A DNA stretch of 64,000 bases, taken from Epithemia pelagica. Its lineage: Eukaryota; Protista; Bacillariophyta. This document shows, in pieces, positions 51,113 to 64,000 of the stretch; within the stretch, counting starts at the first letter, position 1; the number at the start of each line of letters is the position of its first letter. Location: NCBI GenBank assembly GCA_946965045.2, contig OX337229.1, forward strand, positions 1,612,001 to 1,676,000, read 5' to 3'. Both the position numbers and the translations under genes were made by a program. The notes below the pieces were generated by a model that ran no database searches, was not told the origin of the DNA, and was given only the letters and a program-made list of their open reading frames with translations.

Positions 51113-53044
51113 CTCCCTCCTGCCCAAAATTATCGCAACAAGTTACTAAAAATGACGTAACTTCTCACGCGCAAGCCCGTTGGCGCTAAAAATTATATAG
51201 ATCGATAGCTTATTACACGACTCAAATTTCCATGTATAATTTATATGTTCCATCTCACAATCCTGGAGAGTTACAGGGAACTAAACGAGGTGAAAAAAGA
51301 AACTCAGACTTTGGCGTACCGGTTCTGGCCCTACAGGCATACCCAAGCCATGCCACCTTCAGGGGAGGCCCGCAAGGGGGTAAAGTACAAGGAATTGCGG
51401 AGAGAAGACCGCGGACGTGCCATGGCGATCCTTCTAACCTTCCATCTGAATGGCACCTTGCCCAGAGGTGTTTTGTCAGGCGTCGCTGAAATGTTTGGTG
51501 TGCATCGATCCACCATAAGCCGACTTTGGGAGCGCGCGCAGAAATCGCGCGTGGAGAACGTAATTAACTCTCCTGAAATTTCATCCAACGCACGCGCGCG
51601 CGGAAGACTCCCTATTTGTTCTTCACCAGACGTTAGAGAAGCTGTTAAAAATGTCCCATTGATGAAGAGACGAACCCAGGAACAACTCTCTACCGTTCTG
51701 GGTATGTCAAGAAGCACAGTGCAGCGATTTGTGAAGAAAGGCACTCTACGATGCCATACCAACACCCTAAAACCCTTCCTCACTGAAACCAACATGATGG
51801 CAAGATACCTGATGGCACAATCCTTTGTAAACCCCTTGAAACCCGGTGAGTACCAAGACATGATGGACATGATCCATGTCGATGAAAAGTGGTTTTTTGT
51901 GACGAAAGATGCACAGCGCTTTATCTTGACCGACGATGAAGAGGATCCACAGAGGACATGCAAACACAAGAGCCACATCACAAAGGTAATGTTCTTTTGT
52001 GCTGTGGCTCGTCCTCGCTTTATTCCAGCTATGAATCAATGGTGGGATGGTAAACTGGGCATCTGGCCCATTGGTGAGTGGGTCCCTGCGAAGAGGAGCA
52101 GCGTCAACAGGGAAAAGGGGACTATGGTATGGAAGAACATTACTGTTAACAGAGAGGTCTACAGGGATTTACTTGTGGAAAAACTAATGCCAGCAATATT
52201 GGAGAAGTGGCCACAAGCAGACAGAAACAAGAGAACCATAAGGATTCAACAGGATGGCGCCAAGTCCCATATCAAGGATGGAGACATGTACTTTGTGGAG
52301 TTCCTGAGATCCATGAAAGAGTTGGGAGTGAGGGCAGAGTTCTTTACACAAGCTCCCAACAGCCCAGACACAAACATTTGTGATCTGGGCTTTTTCAGGG
52401 CTATCCAGAGTCATGGTTTGATTGTTGGGTCGAGCGAGGCACAGCTGCTTGAATCTGTACAGAATGCTTTTGATTCCTATCCAAGAGACAGACTAAACCA
52501 CACATGGCTCACCCTCCAATCTTGCTTCAATGAAATCATTAAAGCAGGAGGAGGGAATGACTACAAAATACCCCACATGAATAAACAGGGGCTGGAGAGG
52601 AGAGGGGAGCTTCCCCATGTGCTGCCAGTTGCAGACGACCTCTGCAGCCCTACAAGCAGCAATCTGCAAGACTAGACATTAATAGACTAGTCAAATGAAT
52701 ACCTGGTCGACCTCCACTGAACCAGGAGGCGACCAGGGGCCACGGCCAATGATCGTCACCCTAGTAGGAGTAGGATCATTGTGTGTGTTGTGTCGTTGTT
52801 CCTGCCATTCGTGATTTTTCAGTGTTGGTGGTGGGAGATGAGTGAGGTCTTGTACCGTTGGGGAGTGATGATTGAAGGGCTGGATAGATTTTTTAGCACG
52901 TGTCACAGTGAATGTTCATCTCCAAAATTCGACTCCGAATGAGCCGGCCATCCTCCTGTAGAAATGTACCAGGGCCTACGAGAGCTTTTTGTGCGACTAC
53001 TATGACTAAAAAAACTTGTTGCAATAATTTTGGGCAGGAGGGAG
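51113..53044 (+). mobile_element. Full-length plant-type mariner transposon (1,932 bp) with Stowaway-like TIRs
   Basis: 32-bp TIRs CTCCCTCCTGCCCAAAATTAT(C/T)GCAACAAGTT at 51113-51144 and 53013-53044 (1 mismatch); TA on both flanks (51111-12, 53045-46). Confidence 0.95.
51245..52675 (+). CDS. Mariner-like transposase, uninterrupted, DD42D
   Basis: HVDEKWF, WDGKLGIWP, IQQDGAKSH, PNSPDTNICDLGFF, GGNDYKIPHMNK; N-terminal HTH. Confidence 0.95.
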   Translation: MFHLTILESYRELNEVKKETQTLAYRFWPYRHTQAMPPSGEARKGVKYKELRREDRGRAMAILLTFHLNGTLPRGVLSGVAEMFGVHRSTISRLWERAQKSRVENVINSPEISSNARARGRLPICSSPDVREAVKNVPLMKRRTQEQLSTVLGMSRSTVQRFVKKGTLRCHTNTLKPFLTETNMMARYLMAQSFVNPLKPGEYQDMMDMIHVDEKWFFVTKDAQRFILTDDEEDPQRTCKHKSHITKVMFFCAVARPRFIPAMNQWWDGKLGIWPIGEWVPAKRSSVNREKGTMVWKNITVNREVYRDLLVEKLMPAILEKWPQADRNKRTIRIQQDGAKSHIKDGDMYFVEFLRSMKELGVRAEFFTQAPNSPDTNICDLGFFRAIQSHGLIVGSSEAQLLESVQNAFDSYPRDRLNHTWLTLQSCFNEIIKAGGGNDYKIPHMNKQGLERRGELPHVLPVADDLCSPTSSNLQD

Positions 53045-53410: not shown

Positions 53411-53412
53411 TA

Positions 53413-54006
53413 AGGGCTGGGTAAGCCGATCCATGTTCGGCTAAGTAGGCTCAGTACATTAAGCTACGTAGTACTATTTTCATCACTGTAACAAGTGGGG
53501 CGAATGGTCACAAATCGAAAACTTGCTGCCACGAGAAACAATGCAATCCGGAAACCATCACTCGACAATGGTCGAAGAAATCACCCCCATGGCAATAACT
53601 TCATGGATAATTGAGCCTAACTGAATCACTTTTAGAATAATACTCTTGAATACTAGAGCAACTATGGTTTCAATTTGATTCAGTCACCGTTGAGAAATGA
53701 ATGAGTTAGGAAGGTTTTTGGATTACATCACCAGTATACCTTTTGATCCAACGCGACAAATCTTCTGTAGCTGCAGAACACAGTAATACTAGCAAACTCA
53801 AATAACTTACAGTAGTAGGATGTTGATGCGATGCATCGGTAAATGCATGCGGCATCAACGGATCTCGCCGTCATCGTGGAGTGTTTTTGCATTTTTTCGG
53901 ACTTCCCACCATTTCAGGTATGACGTGTACTATGGGATTTTATGTACGCTACGTAGCTTTTGTACTGAACCTACTTAGCCGAACATGGATCGGCTTACCC
54001 AGCCCT
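53413..54006. mobile_element. MITE (594 bp), superfamily unassigned
   Basis: About 59-bp TIRs AGGGCTGGGTAAGCCGATCCATGTTCGGCTAAGTAGG... at 53413-53471 and 53949-54006; first 37 bp perfect; TA flanks; no ORF. Confidence 0.88.
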
Positions 54007-54645
54007 TAGTAAACTTACAAGCTGAGTTCAGACAGAATGTTCCTGACGTAGCGCTCCAGTAGGAAATCTACGTAATCCGCGCGAGCCATCCCCTTAATAT
54101 AGCCCTTCTATTTATGCCTCTACCGTTCTACCAAAAATTGACCATGGTGAACGGTCCTTTTGACCGATCTCTTGCCAAATAGGAGACGGCTCCATGATCC
54201 CATGCTCTGAACCTCTTCTCCATTCATGGGTTGAGCATGGAGAACGATGTCGGCGCTGCATTCGTTTTGTAGGTGTCGTTTTATCTAGTTGAAGGTGGTC
54301 GCCGCGCGATTTACTACGGCGACTCACGGCAAAACTTGGTGCAACCAATGCACCTCTATTGTAGAATCGAATGATAGAAGATAGAACAAAGACTATGAAC
54401 ACTTGTAGCGTTGTTCACGTCAAAAATTGATATTCTTCTCGTTAGATATATGGAACTTAGACTAGAAGTTGCGTCGTTCACAACAAAGATTGATGTTCTT
54501 TTCTTTGTTGTGACTCACACAGCCGTACCTGAACGCAATGTATTGTACGGTAAACGTAACACAACTATAGAATTAGATCGTATTCATAGAGAATGAAGAT
54601 CCTACTCAAATGATAATCATAAAACGCTGCTACATTGTTCACTAT

Positions 54646-55218
54646 CTAGGCTTGTTGATGATTAAAGAAGAGATTTTGAAGCGGGTGCTTGAGCATCATC
54701 GCACCAAGCGAAATGTTGAAGCGATCCATATCCTTGCTGCCCATGTAGATTGTAACGACCTGGGGTTCCATGCAGGCTTTAGGGTTGATGGAGCAGCGTG
54801 TGTAGAGGCGGATGCGTCCCATGGGAGGTCCGTTCTTGCTCGTCTTTCCAGAGACCTGGTCCAGGTGCGACAGAGCAATGAACCCAACTGGAACAACCAA
54901 CGCTGGTTCCTCATGCTCGCTTGTTGCATCCCGGTCAAAGACTGCAATCCGTAGGTAGTCGGTCGCAAGCTCCCGCTGCACAAGCAGATGGCCACGGTCG
55001 ACGATGTTGTGGCCAGTGTCCTTGTTTCTCGACATGGGCCCGATGAGCGCGCAAACATCGCTGGCATAAAAGCACGACTTGAACGGGAGACCAGCACCAC
55101 CCTCACGGCCATCCTCTTCGTTGAACTCGAACTTCGTCCTCATGTTGGTCATCTTGTTTCTTCTTCCTTGCCTCTTCCTGTCGTCTCTGTTTGATTGTTC
55201 CATTGCACGGCGGGTCAT
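54646..55218 (-). CDS. Cargo orphan protein, 190 aa
   Basis: ATG-to-stop ORF with globular-looking composition, divergent from the 55390 gene across 171 bp; no family recognised. Confidence 0.55.
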   Translation of the reverse strand: MTRRAMEQSNRDDRKRQGRRNKMTNMRTKFEFNEEDGREGGAGLPFKSCFYASDVCALIGPMSRNKDTGHNIVDRGHLLVQRELATDYLRIAVFDRDATSEHEEPALVVPVGFIALSHLDQVSGKTSKNGPPMGRIRLYTRCSINPKACMEPQVVTIYMGSKDMDRFNISLGAMMLKHPLQNLFFNHQQA

Positions 55219-55389
55219 TCGGAAGTTGCTTCATGCTGCAAGTTGATTTTGTGGCGCGCGCCGATATTGTTCACGAATGAGCGCGGGGGGATTCCCTAGA
55301 TGACACAAGAACGGAGAGCGGGCAACAATCAAACAAACAAACACAACAATCAAACGAACGAATCCCTATTGTGTTCTCACTTTCCAACG

Positions 55390-56296
55390 ATGCGCCAGAC
55401 GCGTAGTGCTACCAAACGAGCTGAGTCTGCGAAGAAGGAGCAGGAGGACTCCGCCGCAGCTCCCTCCACAACCGCATTTCCCTCCGACAAGGGAAACAAG
55501 GGAAACAAGGCAAACAAGAAAATGAAGACAAAGACGGCCGTGGACAACAAAACGTCGAAGAAGAAGAAGACGACGACGACGAAGTGTCCCGCTTCGACAA
55601 AGAAGCATGTGACCTTCAACCTTGAGGGTCCTTCGTCGTGGCACGAGCGCGCAAAACAGTGGCAACTCACCATTGGGGATGAAGATGGTATCCCAGTGTT
55701 CTTCGTCAGCAACAAGGACGTCGAATGCGCTAACCTGTCGGATATCGCGGCAGAGCTCCTTGCGATCGAGGCTGTCGGCAAAGAAGGTAAGTTTGATTGT
55801 TCATTGTTGGTTTTGAGTCTCCCTTTCTCACGACGCGCCCTCTGCTGCCACAGACACCAAACCCAACAGCAAGCCCGACAACAAGCCCGACAGCAAGCCC
55901 GAGAAGGAGATCAAGAAGGAGGACGACGTCGAGAACAAGACTCCAGAGTCTTATGTGACCCCGAAGAAAGTAACTTCTTCCCCGAAGGTGGCGTCTCGAG
56001 CTTTCGCACTGACCCCCTCCCAGAAGCATGCTTTCCAGCGTCGGATTGCTGAGGAACAGGTGAAGGAAAGTGGAGCGACAGACCCTCGCCAGACTTTGAA
56101 TGAGTCGCTGGCATTGGGAGAAAACATCCCGTCGTCTCCTCCTTTGTTCTTTAGCAATCCTTCCCGTGCATACCGGACATCCATTGATTCGTATGCCGAT
56201 GATGGATTTCTCGAGACCCAAGAAGACTTCATCGGTACGCAGCAAAACGGGCTTTTTGGTCCCGATTACTTGGATCATGAGGACGAGGCGTACTAG
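55390..56296 (+). CDS. Cargo orphan protein, 279 aa, basic N-terminus and acidic C-terminus, 2 exons (55390-55786, 55854-56296)
   Basis: Intron 55787-55853 (GTAAGT...CAG, 67 nt) joins ORF 55300-56052 in frame to ORF 55955-56296. Confidence 0.7.
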
Positions 56297-56822
56297 ATAT
56301 CTACTGATGGACGTTTTAGGTATCCTTAATCACTAAATATGAATCGATTTGTCATCATGGTACTTGTAGTGCTTCTACAGTCGTTCTTGTTGTGATTATC
56401 ATTATTGTCGTCGTCCAAGTCCTCGTCATTGTCGTGGCTATCATTGTCGTCGTTGTATTGTAGTCGTCCTTGTTGTAGCTATCATCGCTCATCCCGTTTG
56501 TCCTCTTCATCATCGTTATGGTCGTGATTGTCATGGTCATCATCATCGTCATCGTCGTCATCCAGCTTCCCAGTGTCGGCAGTTGGGTCCCGGTTTGCGG
56601 GCGCGTCTCGTATGGATGTACGAGGGAGTTCGTGATTGGTCCCAGACGAGCTATGATTCTTATCTCATATTTTGCGTTTTCGACACTTCATGGAAACAAA
56701 CACGACAATGTACTAAAGTATAATATGAAGGAATAAACTAATAAATCTTAATGTCATACTGCAACTCAACGTACCATGGTATTCTTTTTCAACAATAACA
56801 CACTTTCACCACGAGGAAAGAT

Positions 56823-59672
56823 CTAAGTTTGATCGGCTTCTTTGCTCGCGATCTTCTTACCAGGTTTATAATTCGCGGCCACAAGCACCTTACGAGGATT
56901 GTCACTTAGGACGCAAACACGCTTGTCCCCGACCCAAAGCTTAACCCCAACGAGCCCACTTCGGCGAACACCAGGGATGTCTTTGTCATGGAAGTAGTAG
57001 TCGGAAAGCCTGCTTTCTCCAGAAGGAAGGTTGTAGGTGTTCTTTGGCATGGGATCGTGAACGGTCCCATCTTTTCCTTGGTACACGTAGAAATGTGCAC
57101 GTGGATTCCCCATCTCCCCAGTCTTAAAGCCACCAGCATGGACAGTATCTCCTCGAACGAGGAGAAACGTGCCATATGGGATATGTACCACTTTACCCAG
57201 CTCGTTCATATAATCCTTGTGCTTCTCACCGCGGAAACTCCACAATTCAACGGACATACCCTCCTCCGCCAGGGGCATGAAAACAATAAAAGGCATGCGT
57301 TCCCGGAGTGGCAGATCTGCATTCGCTCTCCGAGTCTTTTTGATTGGTTGCTTCCCGGAGGGCGTTTTGGGACCTTCGGACATGTTCCCTGTTACGCTCT
57401 GGAACAAGAAGTCGATGTGAGGTTCTTGAACTTTTGCCTCTGTGGTCTTCATGAACGAAAGGTGAATGTTGATTTGGTCCGCAAATGAATCATCTTTTGC
57501 GTAGTTCATCCCATAGAGAGCTGAGGCAAGCAGCTGCTTGAAATTGGCCGTGACCTTTGCAGCATGTTCGGGGTTAACGTGGCCGAAGTACCGAATGTTG
57601 GACACCATTCCCTCATGTTCCATCATTGCCATCAACAAATTTGGTGTGTAGTCTTGAACAGATTTGAAAAATTTGCCCTTTCCTTTCTGGTCCAAGCCTG
57701 TGCTGTGCCACGCATTCTCCAACATTTCGAGGAGATCTGGCGGAGTTGTCAAAAAATATCCTCGATACATTTTGTTTTCAATATCGTAAAGCCATTTGAA
57801 ATACTTCGAGCGCAATTCTCTATGTAACAACTTCATTTTCTCGAAACGCTCATTCTCCTTCGCTTTCGCATCGATCGCTTCCATCTCCTCAAAAATACTA
57901 TCCGTGTCATCTTCTGCCATTACCACTGGTACGAACATTCCAGTACTAGGGCTGGGATTGGCTTGAGTGGCGGGTTGAGCTTGTGCTGCAGGTAGGACGG
58001 GACTGCTGGGAAGGAGCACGGGTTGAGCTTGTGCTGCAGGTGGGATGGGATTGCTCGGAAGGAGGTGGGGTGAGCCTTCGACCGGCTGGGTCGTGCGTTG
58101 TTGTTGCTGCTGATGATTGAGCGATGAAGGTAGAGTCCCCCCGTAACCTCCATAGTTGGGTTGATTGTAGGACGGAGGATGTCCATGGTACTGCGGCGGA
58201 GGATGACTCGTCGGAGGATGAGGATAATGCGGCGGAGGATAAGGATAATGCGGCGGAGGATGATGATTGTACTGCGGCGGAGGGTAATTGTACTGCGGCG
58301 GAGGATAATTGTACTGCGGCGGAGGATGGTGATAATATTGCGGAGGATAATGCGGCGGCAGCTGAGGGGGCGAATTGTAGTGCTCAGAAACGTATTGCGG
58401 AGGAGGCGGAGAAGGAGGACGAGCAACAGTAGCAACTGGACGGAAAACAGTAGAAGGAGAAGTTAAGACAGGCTTCTTTGTTTTTTTCCCGTCGTCTTCA
58501 TTTTCATCACTGGGTCGACCGCGTTTCTTTCCCTCGTTTTCGTCGTCGTCACCTTTCGTCGACGGTCGGATAACCTGTTCGGAGGACGTCGGCGATTCGT
58601 CCGTAAGGTTATAAAACAAAGACAGCTCGTCGCCCGGCTCAATATTTTTGATTGCCTTAACTAGAAGATTCGGCATGATTCTCACGTTGTAACCGTCGTC
58701 CGATTCATCCGGTGGATTGTCTGTACCGTACAGATGGTGTTGGTGGTCGTTGATTAAGTGCAGCCCCATGCCGAAGTGATCGTCGTTGTCTGCTTGAAGC
58801 CTTCGATTGTCACGTCCGAACTGAATCGCGTACTCGTTGGGTACAACTGTCCGAGACGTGACGTCGTTTCCCGTGTACGCACCAATCACTTCACCATCTT
58901 TGATTGTCCGAACTGCAAAAACGCCAAACCCGGCGCCTGGGAGTTTTGACTCCTTCACCTCAAACAGAAGCATTTTTCCAAGGTAGATCTTGACTACCGG
59001 ATTGTTCGCAAATGTGTAACCGACATGCTTGCCGATCGGGAAGGTATGTTTTCTGTTCTTCTTGACAGGGAGACCCATTCCACTCGAAAGTGGCACAATC
59101 TTCCCCTTTAGCAAGCCAGAACCGGGCTTCCGAATTGGAGCTTCTTGGACCGAAAAAGTGGCCGAAATCTTCCGTGAGACATACTCTCCCATAGCACAGG
59201 CAAGTACAGCACTGTCTTTGATCTTGGAGAGCGTCTTGAGGCCTTCGGTGAAAGTCCTGATTGGATCCCGTCCAGAACGAGAAGGGAGTTTCTCCACTTC
59301 CTCGATGCCTTTCTTGTAGTCCTCTGTGCGCGTATCGATGAGGAGCTGCCGCATTTGAGTTTCCGAATACTGTTTGCTGTGGTCCTTCTCTGGATGGCCA
59401 CGCCGAACATCTGCAAGCTTTTTATCCTTCACTTCGGCAAAGTCTTGATCCGAAAGAAACCGATGGTGCTTTGTTGTTGTCGCTTCGTCTGTTGCTGCTG
59501 CTTCGGGTGCTGCGGCTGCTGCTGCTTCGGGCGCCGCTGCTGCTTTGGCTGACTGCTCTTCCGCTGCATCTATTGCAAGTATAAGAGCGTCAAGATTTCC
59601 TTTGTCACTCATGCTGTCTCGTTTTTGAGCGCCTGCTTTTGAATACTGTTTCTTAGGGCTTGGTTTCCCCAT
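56823..59672 (-). CDS. Cargo protein, 949 aa: SET domain + Pro/Tyr/His-rich linker + 2OG-Fe(II) dioxygenase domain
   Basis: SET motifs VKESKLPGAGFGVFA, GEVIGAYTG, HLIND, AIKNIEPGDELSLFYN (about 58958-58608); dioxygenase motifs QEPHID (H at 57417-19), GDTVHAGG (H at 57138-40), NPRAHFYV (R at 57099-101). Confidence 0.8.
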   Translation of the reverse strand: MGKPSPKKQYSKAGAQKRDSMSDKGNLDALILAIDAAEEQSAKAAAAPEAAAAAAPEAAATDEATTTKHHRFLSDQDFAEVKDKKLADVRRGHPEKDHSKQYSETQMRQLLIDTRTEDYKKGIEEVEKLPSRSGRDPIRTFTEGLKTLSKIKDSAVLACAMGEYVSRKISATFSVQEAPIRKPGSGLLKGKIVPLSSGMGLPVKKNRKHTFPIGKHVGYTFANNPVVKIYLGKMLLFEVKESKLPGAGFGVFAVRTIKDGEVIGAYTGNDVTSRTVVPNEYAIQFGRDNRRLQADNDDHFGMGLHLINDHQHHLYGTDNPPDESDDGYNVRIMPNLLVKAIKNIEPGDELSLFYNLTDESPTSSEQVIRPSTKGDDDENEGKKRGRPSDENEDDGKKTKKPVLTSPSTVFRPVATVARPPSPPPPQYVSEHYNSPPQLPPHYPPQYYHHPPPQYNYPPPQYNYPPPQYNHHPPPHYPYPPPHYPHPPTSHPPPQYHGHPPSYNQPNYGGYGGTLPSSLNHQQQQQRTTQPVEGSPHLLPSNPIPPAAQAQPVLLPSSPVLPAAQAQPATQANPSPSTGMFVPVVMAEDDTDSIFEEMEAIDAKAKENERFEKMKLLHRELRSKYFKWLYDIENKMYRGYFLTTPPDLLEMLENAWHSTGLDQKGKGKFFKSVQDYTPNLLMAMMEHEGMVSNIRYFGHVNPEHAAKVTANFKQLLASALYGMNYAKDDSFADQINIHLSFMKTTEAKVQEPHIDFLFQSVTGNMSEGPKTPSGKQPIKKTRRANADLPLRERMPFIVFMPLAEEGMSVELWSFRGEKHKDYMNELGKVVHIPYGTFLLVRGDTVHAGGFKTGEMGNPRAHFYVYQGKDGTVHDPMPKNTYNLPSGESRLSDYYFHDKDIPGVRRSGLVGVKLWVGDKRVCVLSDNPRKVLVAANYKPGKKIASKEADQT
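58140..58410 (-). repeat. Coding minisatellite, ~21-bp units encoding PPPQYNY/PPPHYP
   Basis: Repeated GGCGGAGG...TGTACTGC units on the + strand. Confidence 0.85.
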
Positions 59673-60083
59673 GGTCGAAACGCAAAAACTCGAAACACGA
59701 AACACAAGAAACACGAAACGCAGCATTCTCCTCAGCCCTCAGCCCACATTCCAAAAAAAAATCTTGAGCTCACATACTAAAAAACGGTGAAGTTTTGGTA
59801 TGTGGGCTGAGTTACTTAAGGATTTGCGTGCCAGTTTTGCGATGCGTGCGCGTTTTCGGAGAGGGAGGCGTGTTTCGCGCGAGGTCTGCTCCGAAAATCG
59901 TCCATTTTCTCGCTCTCTCACATTTTCGAGGTACTTACAAACTGATAATCCAACACGCAACACGAGCACGCAACACGGAAGTGATCATTGATACCAATAA
60001 CTGACAAGAAATACATTCAATAAAATGGATTGCTGTTATAAATAGTTAAGTTACATGCATTTTGATGATAAATGGAGATTAGA

Positions 60084-63000
60084 TCAGGTTTCTACTGCAC
60101 CAGATCCTTGCGTTTCTCTCCAGAGACGTGAGATGAAGCCATGATCTTGGTCGAAGGCGGATCGGTGACACTTGATTGCTTTTGACATCTTTTCAATTTC
60201 GGCATACGAGAGGCCCGCAGCTGCATAGTCGCTGTTGTTGGAATTTTGATCGTATAACAAGTACGCGAGCATATAGCGACGTGCCTTTGCTGACATTTTC
60301 CGCATGATTTCGGGTGTTGTTTTCTTCAGGCTCGCTGTCAAACATCGTAAAAAGGCAGCTTTGTCTTTCTTCTCATTCAGTGAGAAAGCACGAAAGACTT
60401 TTTTTGAGTAACCCCAGCCATACTCGATCCCCTCACCGGCCATTTCACAGTGATACTTGGTCGATACGAGAATCTCGATCCTGCAACGATGTCGTTCAGA
60501 CAAGTCTTCCGCCAGCTTCTCCATTGCAGATTTTTCGTTCTTGAAATCGGAGCATTCGCTCATCAGATGAACCATAGAGTACTTTTTGTAGTCCGCCTGA
60601 TAGGCTTCTTTCACAGTCTTCTTATCCGCTTCCAACCATGCATCTCTGGTTGTCTTGACGTACTTGATCATGTTGTTAGGGTCTATCCACCCCCGCTCCC
60701 ATAACACTTGAAAGAGCCCTTTTGCATTATTCATCCAGCCTTCCTCGATCACATCATCTTCAATCACCGTTGCAATGTTGGAGCGTTTACAAAGGTCCTG
60801 TAGTTCACCAGCATTTTTCGATTGAAATGAACGTTGCATTCCAGGTCCCATGACCCGGACAAGTTTTGCCATGAGCTCCTTCTTTGTGAGGTTGCGCTTT
60901 TTCTTTCTACCAGTTCGGTGTGTATTCTTCGATGCGACACGCTGCGCGTCATTGAGACGATGGCCTTTTTTAGCAACTGGACCACGATCGTTCTCCTGAT
61001 AGACGAGGTGTTGTACGTCACCAACTCGTAGTTTGTCGTCATGGTTGTACGGGCCAAGGCAAGCTTGATCAATAATTTGTGTGTCCCGCATGCTGGGAAC
61101 AGCTCCTCCCCAGTCGTTATTCATGTTCAGAGCATTTAACCCATCGGATTGTTGTTTTCCATGACCACTGCTTTGGTCGAACAAAAAGACAAAGTCATGG
61201 GCGGGGAACATGACCACGAGGCAATCGACAATATCCTCCAACTGCAAGGCCATGTATTCATAATTCCAATATCCCTCTTTATCTGCTCCGTATTCAAAAA
61301 AGCGAGTGAACGGTTGGGCATTGGTAATTGGAGTCTTGGCAGTGTGACCATTGAGGTTCACTGCAGCCTCGGTAGAGACGTATTTGTTGTGTGTCGCATG
61401 TAGACGGAGTTCATTAATCCGAAATAGACTCGCAGCAAGCAACGGGTTTCCGTTCATAAGGAAGCCCCATGATCGGCTTACAAAAGCGCTGATCATCATC
61501 CCATGTCCATCATCCTTTGGCAGCATTTTAGTTGCGCCATCTTTAGTGTACCATGCCTTAGACGAGAAGGAAAACTGCTTGTAGATCGATTCGTCCTGGC
61601 CGATGAGGATGACAGGTTTGCGGTCGGAGGGAAACCTGTGTGACAAGTTTCCATTGTGAATTGTGTTTTCTGGTTTGATGTACCGTTCAAATTCGCTTGG
61701 GAAGGCATCAACATGGTACTCCCGCATCTGCTTGCCTGTTGTTACATCAGTGTACTCAAATACAAAGCTGTTTGGCAAGAGCTTCTCCTTGCCCGCATTC
61801 CCTTCGTTTTCAAGTTTGATTGCATCCTCGGTAGGGAGCTGCACCCACCGATACGACAGCTCTTCCCACTTAAAGTACTTCTTGACAAAAGCAGCTCTGT
61901 GGGCAACATTCTCAGCATTTTCGTGTCGATCAGTGAAGTATGTTTTCGTGTGTTCCTTGAACACGAGCCCTGCAGCAGCAATACATCGCCACGCTGTGCT
62001 TTGCGAAATGGTGGAAAGCTTCATCGATGCCAAGAAGGCCTCGTACGATACTGGCGTTGCATTCGTATCCATGCACTCTTGTACGATCATGGTATGCATA
62101 TCCGGAAGCAATGTTGTCCTCAGGTACATTAGAGCAGACTCTGTTGTAAGAGTGCTCAGGTTTTCCTTTGCCCAGCATTCAAACTTTACCTTTGCTTCAG
62201 GTATGTGAACGAATAAGACGGGCGATGGCTCTTTCCCAATATGAACGTGGTAGTTGGGATGAGGGAAACTGTCGTTTTCCCGAAAGTACCTGTGAAAACG
62301 AGCAATGGTCTTGGGATGTTTTTTTACTTTTTCACCATAAATCTGTTCCATTTTGCTTATGGCTTCGCTTATGCAGTTCAGCCATGTACGACCGTGTGGC
62401 ATATCAAGCAACGCTATCTTATAAGAAAGTTGTAAATACGTTGCCTTGAGCAGTACCCTCTGTTGCTGTTCCTGGTTGGGGGGGAAGATGTCTCCCTTGT
62501 TAACCACATTCGGAAGTGCCTCCACGTTGGAAATGGCCCTTTCAAGGGTTTCTATCCATCGCTCAAGATTTCGTTTTGACGATCCTGGAGAATCGCATTT
62601 GCCGGCAAAGAGCCTACGGTTCCTTGGCTCATCAAAACAGGCGCTTTCCATTTGTTGCGATAGACCTTGGATCATCTCACTCTCGAAAACTGAAAAACCA
62701 ATCGGCAAACTCTGTGGATGGTCATGGCCGATTTCGTCTGTGGCCAATTCAGGATGTTGGATTGCTCCAACAAGCACCTGATTTGTGTTGTCGTGAGGTG
62801 GTGACGTTTGCATTTCGGTAGGGCTGTCTCCAATTTGTGGCGGTTGACCATGTTGCTGCGTTGCAGTGCTCTTCATTGCTGGTGGTGTTGTAGTGTTTCT
62901 TGCTTGCTTGGATACAGTTGCCGTGCCTTCATGTACCCCTGGTGAGTCTTCGTTCCTTCGCTTCGTTGGCTTCTCTCGTCCCGACCGCCGAATCACATTC

Positions 63001-63350
63001 TCGGCTGCAGCCTCCAGCCATTCTTGGTGATCGTTCAACATCACTGGCAGTTTTGTTGTGTCGGAGCTTATATACAAGAATGTGTATCTTTGTTTATTGA
63101 TTGTGATTTTGTGGCGGTACCAGCCAAACTTGTTTGGTTCCGACACCTCATTTTCGAAAATGGGTTTAAGGACAATGTCTCTAGAGAAAAGAGAATTCAA
63201 TCTGATTGTCGACAGTCCTGGCAACCAAGTTCTCAGGTATCCTACAATCTCGGTGTCTTGGATCCACTTGTTGCAGAATCCGAACGAGGATCGGGTGCAT
63301 CGCGTCTTAAAGACGTCAAGAATATCTTTCCCAGAAAAATTTCGTTCCAT
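60084..63350 (-). CDS. Large DDE transposase (1088 aa), IS630/Tc1/mariner-like, D138D250E
   Basis: GQDES (D at 61593-95), FLFDQSSGH (D at 61176-78), KYHCEMAGEGIEYGWG (E at 60423-25); upstream HTH-like ISQSTAWR and YFTDRHE motifs; uninterrupted ORF. Confidence 0.88.
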   Translation of the reverse strand: MERNFSGKDILDVFKTRCTRSSFGFCNKWIQDTEIVGYLRTWLPGLSTIRLNSLFSRDIVLKPIFENEVSEPNKFGWYRHKITINKQRYTFLYISSDTTKLPVMLNDHQEWLEAAAENVIRRSGREKPTKRRNEDSPGVHEGTATVSKQARNTTTPPAMKSTATQQHGQPPQIGDSPTEMQTSPPHDNTNQVLVGAIQHPELATDEIGHDHPQSLPIGFSVFESEMIQGLSQQMESACFDEPRNRRLFAGKCDSPGSSKRNLERWIETLERAISNVEALPNVVNKGDIFPPNQEQQQRVLLKATYLQLSYKIALLDMPHGRTWLNCISEAISKMEQIYGEKVKKHPKTIARFHRYFRENDSFPHPNYHVHIGKEPSPVLFVHIPEAKVKFECWAKENLSTLTTESALMYLRTTLLPDMHTMIVQECMDTNATPVSYEAFLASMKLSTISQSTAWRCIAAAGLVFKEHTKTYFTDRHENAENVAHRAAFVKKYFKWEELSYRWVQLPTEDAIKLENEGNAGKEKLLPNSFVFEYTDVTTGKQMREYHVDAFPSEFERYIKPENTIHNGNLSHRFPSDRKPVILIGQDESIYKQFSFSSKAWYTKDGATKMLPKDDGHGMMISAFVSRSWGFLMNGNPLLAASLFRINELRLHATHNKYVSTEAAVNLNGHTAKTPITNAQPFTRFFEYGADKEGYWNYEYMALQLEDIVDCLVVMFPAHDFVFLFDQSSGHGKQQSDGLNALNMNNDWGGAVPSMRDTQIIDQACLGPYNHDDKLRVGDVQHLVYQENDRGPVAKKGHRLNDAQRVASKNTHRTGRKKKRNLTKKELMAKLVRVMGPGMQRSFQSKNAGELQDLCKRSNIATVIEDDVIEEGWMNNAKGLFQVLWERGWIDPNNMIKYVKTTRDAWLEADKKTVKEAYQADYKKYSMVHLMSECSDFKNEKSAMEKLAEDLSERHRCRIEILVSTKYHCEMAGEGIEYGWGYSKKVFRAFSLNEKKDKAAFLRCLTASLKKTTPEIMRKMSAKARRYMLAYLLYDQNSNNSDYAAAGLSYAEIEKMSKAIKCHRSAFDQDHGFISRLWRETQGSGAVET

Positions 63351-64000
63351 CCTGTTGTAGACCGTGTTGCGTGGGATGAGTTGGATGATCGAATTATTGA
63401 GGATGATGCCAACCGTTTGAGATGTTGCCCCATTTGGGGTGGTTCAAGTAAACCCTAAAGCATCCGGATGCAGCTCGGCAACATCTCGAACGGTTGGGAT
63501 GGCCCTCCACCATGGTCGTTAGACAACAACCGTTTTTTCATCATTTTCGACGGAATTCTAGCGTTCGGAAGCTGTCACACATCACGGTACGAAACAAAAA
63601 ATTTATTATTCAGACACTGGGTTGTCACGAGTCGGACACTTTCATTCACTAGTCAGGCCAAACGCTATTGAGGATTATATTTTATGGTACTAAATCTACG
63701 AGGGGTCTACGTCAGGAACATACTCCCTGAACTCAGCTTGTACTCCCTATCAAGCTGTGTAGGTAGTGAGAAATTCCTGGAAGCCATGTCACAAAGTGTC
63801 ACACAAGTGTCACACACGAGAGGGAAACCGCGCGACTCTCACGAAACTACTTCCCGGTCGTACAAAAAATTCCTACTGTAGTATAAAAATGTGAGACGAA
63901 CTACCTACACAGTCTGGTATGGAGTTAGTAGAAAGCTATGAGTAGTAGAGGAGTAGAGGAGTTCTACGTTCTCTACTGCTCCGTTTTGTGGAAAGAGCTG

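Follow-up and report, generated by a model that had tools for sequence, protein, structure and literature searches.

The stretch of DNA analysed here (the window) comprises 64,000 nucleotides (nt) of the diatom Epithemia pelagica (GenBank assembly GCA_946965045.2, contig OX337229.1, positions 1,612,001 to 1,676,000 of the forward strand), and it contains a 9.7-kb element, located at 54018-63740, in which four intact genes are enclosed by terminal inverted repeats (TIRs). The inverted-repeat arms are 47 nt long (54016-54062 and 63696-63742) and share 83% identity. Their core of 34 nt (54018-54051 and 63707-63740) is matched at 31 of the 34 positions, leaving three mismatches, and none of 100 shuffles matched. 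The left TIR (54018-54062, plus strand) starts with CAAGCTGAGTTCAG in its core, and its imperfect pairing with the right TIR (63696-63740, minus strand) reaches 54062. A TA dinucleotide lies directly outside each end; the one at the left end (54016-54017) is a putative target-site duplication, and the one at the right end occupies 63741-63742.

Three of the four genes are located on the minus strand: a transposase gene of 1088 amino acids (aa; 60084-63350), a gene of 967 aa (56823-59726) in which a SET domain is fused to a 2-oxoglutarate- and Fe(II)-dependent (2OG-Fe(II)) oxygenase domain, and a conserved accessory gene of 190 aa, named orf190 (54646-55218). All three are open, uninterrupted frames, and homologues of orf190 occupy the same place in four diverged elements described below (L002-L005). 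The remaining gene, gene 4 (55390-56296, plus strand), lies on the opposite strand and consists of two exons (55390-55786 and 55854-56296), which are joined in frame by removal of a 67-nt intron (55787-55853, GTAAGT...CAG) and encode 279 aa. The preliminary description of this DNA had reported 34-bp TIRs matching at 31 of 34 positions with TA on their outer sides, an uninterrupted frame of 1088 aa, and two further open reading frames (ORFs), one of them with a clean intron, and each of these points was recovered in our analysis.

Copies, relatives and target site

Five other loci in assembly ERZ21939226 encode a transposase identical to that of the window over all 1088 aa; in the same assembly, the window locus corresponds to contig ctg1343l. 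At these loci (L006-L010) the sequence shares 99.80-99.95% identity with window positions 54016-63742, and the similarity ends at the two outer TA dinucleotides, beyond which neither the genes nor the sequences are related. All four ORFs are intact in the five near-identical copies, with protein identities to the window of 100% for the transposase and orf190, at least 99% for gene 4, and 99.8% for the SET-2OG protein. Based on this, the segment 54018-63740 is very probably one copy of an autonomous and recently active cut-and-paste DNA transposon. The preliminary description had proposed such an element with its genes inside the TIRs, and had suggested looking for the same gene order at different TA sites; indeed, these genes were found between the same TIRs at six loci, and the arrangement recurs in diverged relatives. 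All of its own reservations, among them that the TIR pair might never bracket these genes elsewhere, were thus settled in favour of the element. The alternative that the TIRs enclose host genes by accident, as two unrelated ends of miniature inverted-repeat transposable elements (MITEs) on either side of a host SET-2OG gene, could appeal to the MITE-like repeats that flank the element on both sides. However, we consider it refuted for all practical purposes, because five other loci, each in a different sequence context, contain the entire 9.7 kb with its boundaries exactly at the TIRs, and because diverged relatives hold the same genes within TIRs of their own.

Since the cluster of transposases at 90% identity has 43 member sequences, dozens of copies and fragments probably exist. 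Contigs from a marine sediment metagenome, eight out of nine of them at 99% identity or more, overlie parts of the element at low depth. A seventh copy, L001 (L001:9615-14746 and beyond), shares 97% identity with the window from the right TIR up to position 58611 inside the SET gene, after which the sequence is unrelated; two ORFs (636 and 501 aa) are present there, and a Copia RVT_2 gene follows downstream. Either a nested insertion has disrupted this copy, or it arose by recombination.

The same assembly encodes four further transposases that are 38-56% identical to that of the window, and these reside in elements L002-L005, which have lengths of 8.4, 7.0, 11.5 and 9.8 kb, respectively. Each of these elements has its own TIRs and TA followed by CAAGCTGG at both ends, a pattern that in its fuller form reads TA followed by C(A/T/G)AGCTGGTT..., and the terminal motif CAAGCTG(A)GTT is common to all family members. 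Using tblastn, a gene for a SET-domain protein, followed by a homologue of orf190, was found downstream of the transposase gene and on the same strand in all four. A two-ORF gene on the opposite strand lies between SET and orf190 in L002-L004; in L005, homology to gene 4 was detected by tblastn alone and no spliced model was recovered. The gene order in the family is therefore transposase, SET-domain protein, opposite-strand two-exon gene, and orf190. Thus, the accessory genes lie within the TIRs and are kept across copies and diverged lineages, as is to be asked of a transposon with chromatin-acting cargo. In every pair compared, the proportion of nonsynonymous differences (pN) was smaller than that of synonymous differences (pS) for the transposase, the SET protein and orf190, and these three genes are thus under purifying selection. 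The terminal motif also seems to be conserved well beyond this genome, because TA followed by GTAGCTGGTTCACG is present about 1 kb upstream of the gene for a 32%-identical transposase on a metagenome contig (L013:1499).

Reduced forms of the element were identified in a second assembly, ERZ25042306. Two elements of 1.77 kb (L018:9400-11172 and L019:9394-11171) have the TA + CAAGCTGGGTTCAG termini of the family, but of its genes nothing is left except codons 10-43 of the transposase and a homologue of orf190, SET having been lost. Judged from their structure, they show the pattern of classical internal-deletion derivatives. The 90% cluster of their orf190 homologue comprises 24 members, and a deleted form with orf190 still in place has thus multiplied in this other genome.

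With respect to the target site, TA was found on both sides in 10 out of the 10 insertions examined (20 of 20 flanks). In addition, the target of copy L007 is a tandem repeat of two units, of which the intact unit reads GGGGCC-TA-GAA and the interrupted unit GGGGCC-TA-[element]-TA-GAA. This paralogous site fits a duplication of TA upon insertion, and we consider it supportive but not decisive. On the other side of the balance, no true empty-site allele was found, so that the TA could formally represent the last two bases of the TIR. Removal in silico of the element together with one TA, carried out for the six near-identical copies and L002, yielded no convincingly restored gene.

Several repeats were observed in the vicinity of the element. 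A 598-bp MITE with 48-nt TIRs (98% complementary) is located at 53411-54008, 7 bp from the orf190-side end of the element, and copies of it occur near this end in L008 (at a distance of 16 bp) and in the diverged element L004 (2 bp). This MITE is therefore found beside the element in 3 out of 10 insertions, always on the orf190 side, and one of the two, MITE or element, has a preference for this neighbourhood. The right flank (63742-63925) is a small inverted-repeat element with arms of 26 nt (63742-63767 and 63900-63925), at which contig depth is very high and the sequence continues in many alternative ways; because this flank is itself a repeat element, the window transposon sits between two repeats. 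Finally, an ORF of 476 aa at 51245-52675 (plus strand), 1.3 kb from the element, matches DUF7769 and, faintly, HTH_23 and HTH_17. It may be another transposase-like gene, and an ORF with DUF7769 also adjoins the deletion derivative in L018.

A divergent transposase

A model of the transposase was generated with AlphaFold2 from 19 sequences (mean predicted local distance difference test score, pLDDT, of 77.8) and compared with 48,161 chains in an exhaustive structural search using VIA-align. The top match was the transposase domain of Metnase (Z 14.2, 194 out of 201 residues, root-mean-square deviation of 2.9), and the catalytic domains of Mos1 and Sleeping Beauty obtained Z values of 14.0 and 12.5, the three catalytic-domain alignments spanning 193-204 residues. 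Full-length Mos1 (3hos_A) aligned over 317 of 336 residues with residues 296-1054 of the model (Z 13.7), including its helix-turn-helix (HTH) domains, and the next-best matches, retroviral integrases, had Z values of 8.8 or lower. Clusters of the AlphaFold database (AFDB) annotated as "Tc1-like transposase DDE domain" matched from about residue 328 onwards at E values of 1e-17 to 1e-9, and protein-language features point to DDE_3. The whole 1088-residue model gave weak matches when it was compared with the PDB by Foldseek (Mos1, E 0.24).

According to the model, the transposase would consist of an N-terminal winged-helix-like domain (residues 1-118, window positions 62997-63350, minus strand), a disordered linker (residues 119-227), helical/HTH domains (residues ~296-470), and an RNase H-like catalytic domain (residues 474-1054). 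The predicted catalytic triad is formed by D586 (GQDES), D725 (FDQSSGH) and E969 (KYHCE.AGEGIEY.W), of which D586 and D725 are invariant in the family alignment. The two aspartates are 138 residues apart, and an insert of about 225 residues (~730-955) between the second aspartate and the glutamate results in a D-E spacing of 243 in the window copy, a distance that varies from 198 to 290 across 17 relatives. The motifs DE(S), D..S.H and E...IE..W resemble signatures of Tc1/mariner transposases. The extra N-terminal domain was confidently modelled and is parted from the rest of the protein by the 110-residue disordered linker; its weak matches are winged-helix modules, namely those of ESCRT-II, TFIIIC tauB and Z-alpha (Z 5-6).

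Because Metnase, Mos1 and Sleeping Beauty occupy the top structural ranks, and because D586, D725 and E969 are conserved, the transposase can be expected to work like a Tc1/mariner transposase. In that case it would bind the TIRs, excise the element, and reinsert it at a TA dinucleotide, which would be duplicated. The DDE transposase postulated in the preliminary description is invisible to Pfam and emerges from the structure, and the description's multi-gene lineage related to Tc1/mariner stands as well, since the element is mobile and flanked by TA, has a fold of the Tc1/mariner type, and keeps its gene set. Several of the features by which Tc1/mariner transposons are recognized are present: an RNase H-like DDE/D domain of the Mos1/Tc1 type in the structure model, an N-terminal bipartite HTH region that structural alignment predicts to bind DNA, and insertion at TA with its apparent duplication, as seen at all 20 flanks and in the paralogous repeat unit of L007. 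Others are absent. The classical D-E spacing is 34-41, or 82 in Sailor, versus 243 here; the profiles DDE_3, Transposase_1 and HTH_Tnp_Tc3 do not recognize the protein; and instead of a single gene on 1.3-2.4 kb, the family has four genes on 7.0-11.5 kb. Because it fails on spacing, profile recognition and the single-gene plan, the family is placed in no named family, and is filed as a very divergent Tc1/mariner-like lineage.

Some of the results weigh against even this broad assignment. Pfam gave no family for the window transposase at E<=10 other than one chance match, and no match at E<=1 for 19 of its relatives; the family profile found no transposase among PDB sequences; and, to our knowledge, a D-E spacing of 243 lies far outside that of any Tc1/mariner transposase. 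It could therefore be argued that the mechanism of the element is not Tc1/mariner-like, that TA is the end of the TIR, and that the family represents a separate superfamily sharing the general RNase H fold. The missing sequence matches, the failure to find a true empty site, and the D-E gap, which spans 243 residues and contains an insertion domain such as occurs in enzymes of the hAT, P or Transib type, would all be in keeping with that view. We nevertheless consider it very unlikely, for Mos1, Metnase and Sleeping Beauty score about 4-5 Z units above all other enzymes with an RNase H fold, nearly the whole Mos1 chain including the HTH domains can be aligned, the three motifs resemble those of Tc1/mariner, and L007 offers a paralogous site with a single TA.

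Accessory genes and their possible roles

The SET domain (58608-58931, minus strand; residues 266-373), which had been recognized in the preliminary description, matches Pfam family PF00856 with an E value of 7.6e-6 and a score of 26.7 bits, above the cut-off of 22.4. Its cofactor and catalytic motifs could be located in the window copy (GxG at 264-268, YTG at 284-286, and ELSLFY at 367-372), and YxG and the tyrosine of ELxxxY are invariant in the family. A profile built from the SET domains of five lineages matches those of MECOM/PRDM3 and EZH2 at about E 2e-5.

The second domain of the fusion protein, the 2OG-Fe(II) oxygenase domain (57048-57809, minus strand; residues ~640-893), had no match in Pfam, and it was its fold and active site that bore out its earlier identification. 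It is separated from SET by a low-complexity linker rich in Pro, Gln and Tyr (57927-58409, minus strand), part of which derives from a 21-nt tandem repeat present in seven copies (58188-58403) that encodes PPPQY/PPPHY-rich sequence. The model of the domain has a pLDDT of 84.6, and Foldseek returned 384 PDB matches at E<=1e-3, of which the best 50 are all 2OG-Fe(II) oxygenases. VIA-align yielded Z values of 12.3 for AsqJ and 11.6 for a prolyl hydroxylase. The nearest folds are those of the PhyH type (AsqJ, AndA and FtmOx1) and prolyl hydroxylases, with ALKBH1 and FTO reaching Z 9.6-10. A double-stranded beta-helix with the predicted iron ligands H770, D772 and H863 and a basic residue, the predicted 2OG-binding R876, is present, and these four residues are invariant in 40 relatives. 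The domain thus appears, on the evidence of its model, to have a generic PhyH/prolyl-hydroxylase-like fold with an H-x-D...H...R site. Identity as a JmjC or TET/JBP domain was also considered and rejected, given that the best matches are PhyH-type enzymes and prolyl hydroxylases; JmjC and TET/JBP proteins are absent from the best 50 matches of both searches.

Whereas a word-based search with the full-length SET-2OG protein found its own cluster alone, an exhaustive search with the 2OG piece yielded 241 relatives. Ten long relatives were scanned for informative domain fusions and none was found; one relative has a TFIIS/Med26 helical bundle. Of the five lineages compared, only those of the window and L005 have the C-terminal 2OG part, and because this part is confined to one sub-lineage, it is a late addition that does not belong to the core of the family. 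A relative with 36% identity is an ordinary gene in syntenic eukaryotic contigs, which makes capture from a host gene the probable origin of the domain. An "eraser" role of the domain finds no support, as the domain is PhyH/prolyl-hydroxylase-like and found in one sub-lineage only, and the methylation-modifying machinery that the preliminary description thought might counter host silencing is conjectural. The SET-2OG genes of the window and L005 (56823-59726 and L005:13785-16736) are 85% identical at the amino acid level in the SET part, with a synonymous divergence (dS) of 0.16, as compared with a dS of 0.87 for orf190 and 56% amino acid identity for the transposase. Because the SET-2OG genes are far closer to each other than are the other genes, these values suggest a recent exchange of the SET-2OG module between element lineages.

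SET was the only Pfam match when all ORFs were scanned, and neither orf190 nor gene 4 matched a Pfam family. The N-terminus of the gene 4 product is rich in Lys and its tail is acidic (DDGF.ETQ), and the protein contains a QWQL..D..G motif. Its homologues in L002, L003 and L004 have a GT-AG intron of 61-71 nt at the equivalent place, and share with it the motifs QWQL..D..G, TPG.K.A and DDGFE.TQ. The best conserved protein of the element is orf190: 55 columns are invariant in the alignment of the five lineages, and differences are concentrated at third-codon positions (the ratio of nonsynonymous to synonymous divergence, dN/dS, being about 0.23 versus L005). For this protein there is a weak lead to a C2-like beta-sandwich.

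What do these genes do? Because they have never been parted from the transposase over a deep divergence, and show purifying selection, the three accessory genes would be expected to serve the element itself. The cargo shared by the whole family comprises the SET protein and two further proteins, and its most likely role, we infer, is an action on chromatin at or around the element by which the element would be kept expressed or transposable. The SET protein would then methylate a histone or another nuclear protein, and the two small proteins may be its partners, or adaptors that bind DNA or chromatin. In the sub-lineage of the window, the SET gene would in addition have been fused to a 2OG-Fe(II) domain, probably of host origin.

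A number of points have to be set against this proposal. The NH motif of the SET domain is atypical (LINDH), and for that reason its catalytic activity is not assured. An action of the cargo on the chromatin of the element, and likewise the direction of such an action, is something that we infer. No SET, orf190 or gene 4 was found beside the distant transposase relatives L012 and L013, which lie on short contigs, so that part of the wider clade may lack the four-gene set. Contigs of the three sequencing runs of the organism and of one sediment metagenome yielded no splice evidence for the predicted intron, no measure of expression, nor an empty site; the joints in them were non-canonical and located at CAA/CAG repeats, and are assembly artefacts at low-complexity repeats.

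Two other roles for the cargo were weighed. On the one hand, the accessory proteins could be cofactors of transposition, such that gene 4, orf190 and perhaps SET bring the transposase to the ends of the element or to its target DNA. For the small proteins this is the main rival to a role in chromatin, even though we hold it to be rather unlikely. There is a precedent in PIF/Harbinger elements, where a Myb-like second protein recruits the transposase. The Lys-rich N-terminus and conserved short motifs of gene 4 would suit such a function, as would the strong conservation of orf190, and the deletion derivatives of the second assembly, which keep orf190 and have lost SET and most of the transposase, fit a small factor acting in cis or trans. 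However, Pfam detected no DNA-binding domain in gene 4 or orf190, the transposase has HTH domains of its own, and Tc1/mariner transposases are established to work without cofactors. On the other hand, the SET protein might write a repressive mark, or label the element for targeting or self-limitation, and thereby keep it quiet and tolerated instead of helping it to escape silencing. SET proteins of the PRDM type and EZH2, which are mostly associated with repression, are the nearest solved sequences, but these matches (about E 2e-5) are too weak to assign a substrate, and six copies that are intact and nearly identical point to a recently active element more than to one that silences itself; we therefore regard this option as improbable.

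Returning to an action of the cargo in favour of the element, we tentatively put forward a broader reading, which we would not yet favour over its alternatives: that the family is a deep, undescribed branch of IS630/Tc1/mariner ("DD~240E", with an inserted domain) that, in contrast to any member known so far, is obligatorily multi-gene. Its transposase would co-evolve with SET and the two other proteins, and these would be required for mobility or for escape from silencing in diatoms.

Comparison with known transposons and implications

Tc1/mariner elements represent the textbook minimal transposon, with one gene and no cofactors. The family described here resembles them (Mos1, Hsmar1/Metnase and Sleeping Beauty) in having TA on both sides, short TIRs, and a transposase with HTH domains and an RNase H-like DDE core. 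It differs from them in its size of 7-11.5 kb with four genes, as opposed to 1.3-2.4 kb with one, and in its transposase of about 1000-1100 aa, with an extra winged-helix-like N-terminus and an insert of about 225 residues. In primate SETMAR/Metnase, too, SET and a mariner-type transposase are functionally linked, and its transposase domain is our top structural match. SETMAR, however, is a host fusion gene derived from a dead Hsmar1 copy, whereas the present element is a live transposon that encodes SET and the transposase in two separate genes.

The concept of chromatin-enzyme cargo in transposons is already known. According to the account in PMC12730594, which cites Kojima and Jurka (Repbase Reports 2014), SET-domain histone methyltransferase genes are present in HarbingerS and MuDR elements of Phytophthora. 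As far as that account goes, these are likewise stramenopile DNA transposons with a stable SET accessory gene inside the TIRs; they differ in that their transposase is of the PIF/Harbinger or Mutator type and not Tc1/mariner-like, the SET genes being compared by description only. The Plavaka element (CACTA-related) of the red alga Bostrychia moritziana has three accessory genes that include SET and 2OG, and Helitrons have captured both SET and 2OG genes (bioRxiv 10.1101/2025.02.11.637652). Plavaka is thus another multi-gene DNA transposon of an alga with SET and 2OG-dependent oxygenase accessory domains, although its transposase belongs to a different superfamily. Moreover, these domains are encoded by separate genes in Plavaka, one combining SET with a DNA methylase and the other 2OG with a DNA-binding domain, while SET and 2OG are fused in one sub-lineage here, and the two other accessory genes of our element are unrelated. 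Fungal KDZ, Plavaka and Helitron elements carry TET/JBP dioxygenases (PMC12730594). With these elements, and with VANDAL/VANC of Arabidopsis, the present family shares the concept of a transposon-encoded protein that is proposed or shown to counter silencing. Unlike the TET/JBP enzymes, the 2OG domain found here is PhyH-/prolyl-hydroxylase-like, and an anti-silencing role of our element is conjectural.

No description of this family was found in the literature searched, a search that did not extend to Repbase and Dfam. New features are the Tc1/mariner-like backbone with a D-E gap of 243 residues, the constant set of four genes in a fixed order, the fusion of SET with 2OG, and a diatom as host. 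With it, diatoms and a third or fourth transposase superfamily join the list of transposons that carry chromatin enzymes, which suggests a repeated, convergent capture of such enzymes by transposons. The element, being apparently active, could be developed into a genetic tool for diatoms, and its six near-identical intact copies make the role of a transposon-borne SET enzyme directly testable. Finally, the conservation of three extra genes, SET among them, down to a transposase identity of 38% would show that even Tc1/mariner can evolve a dependent accessory module.

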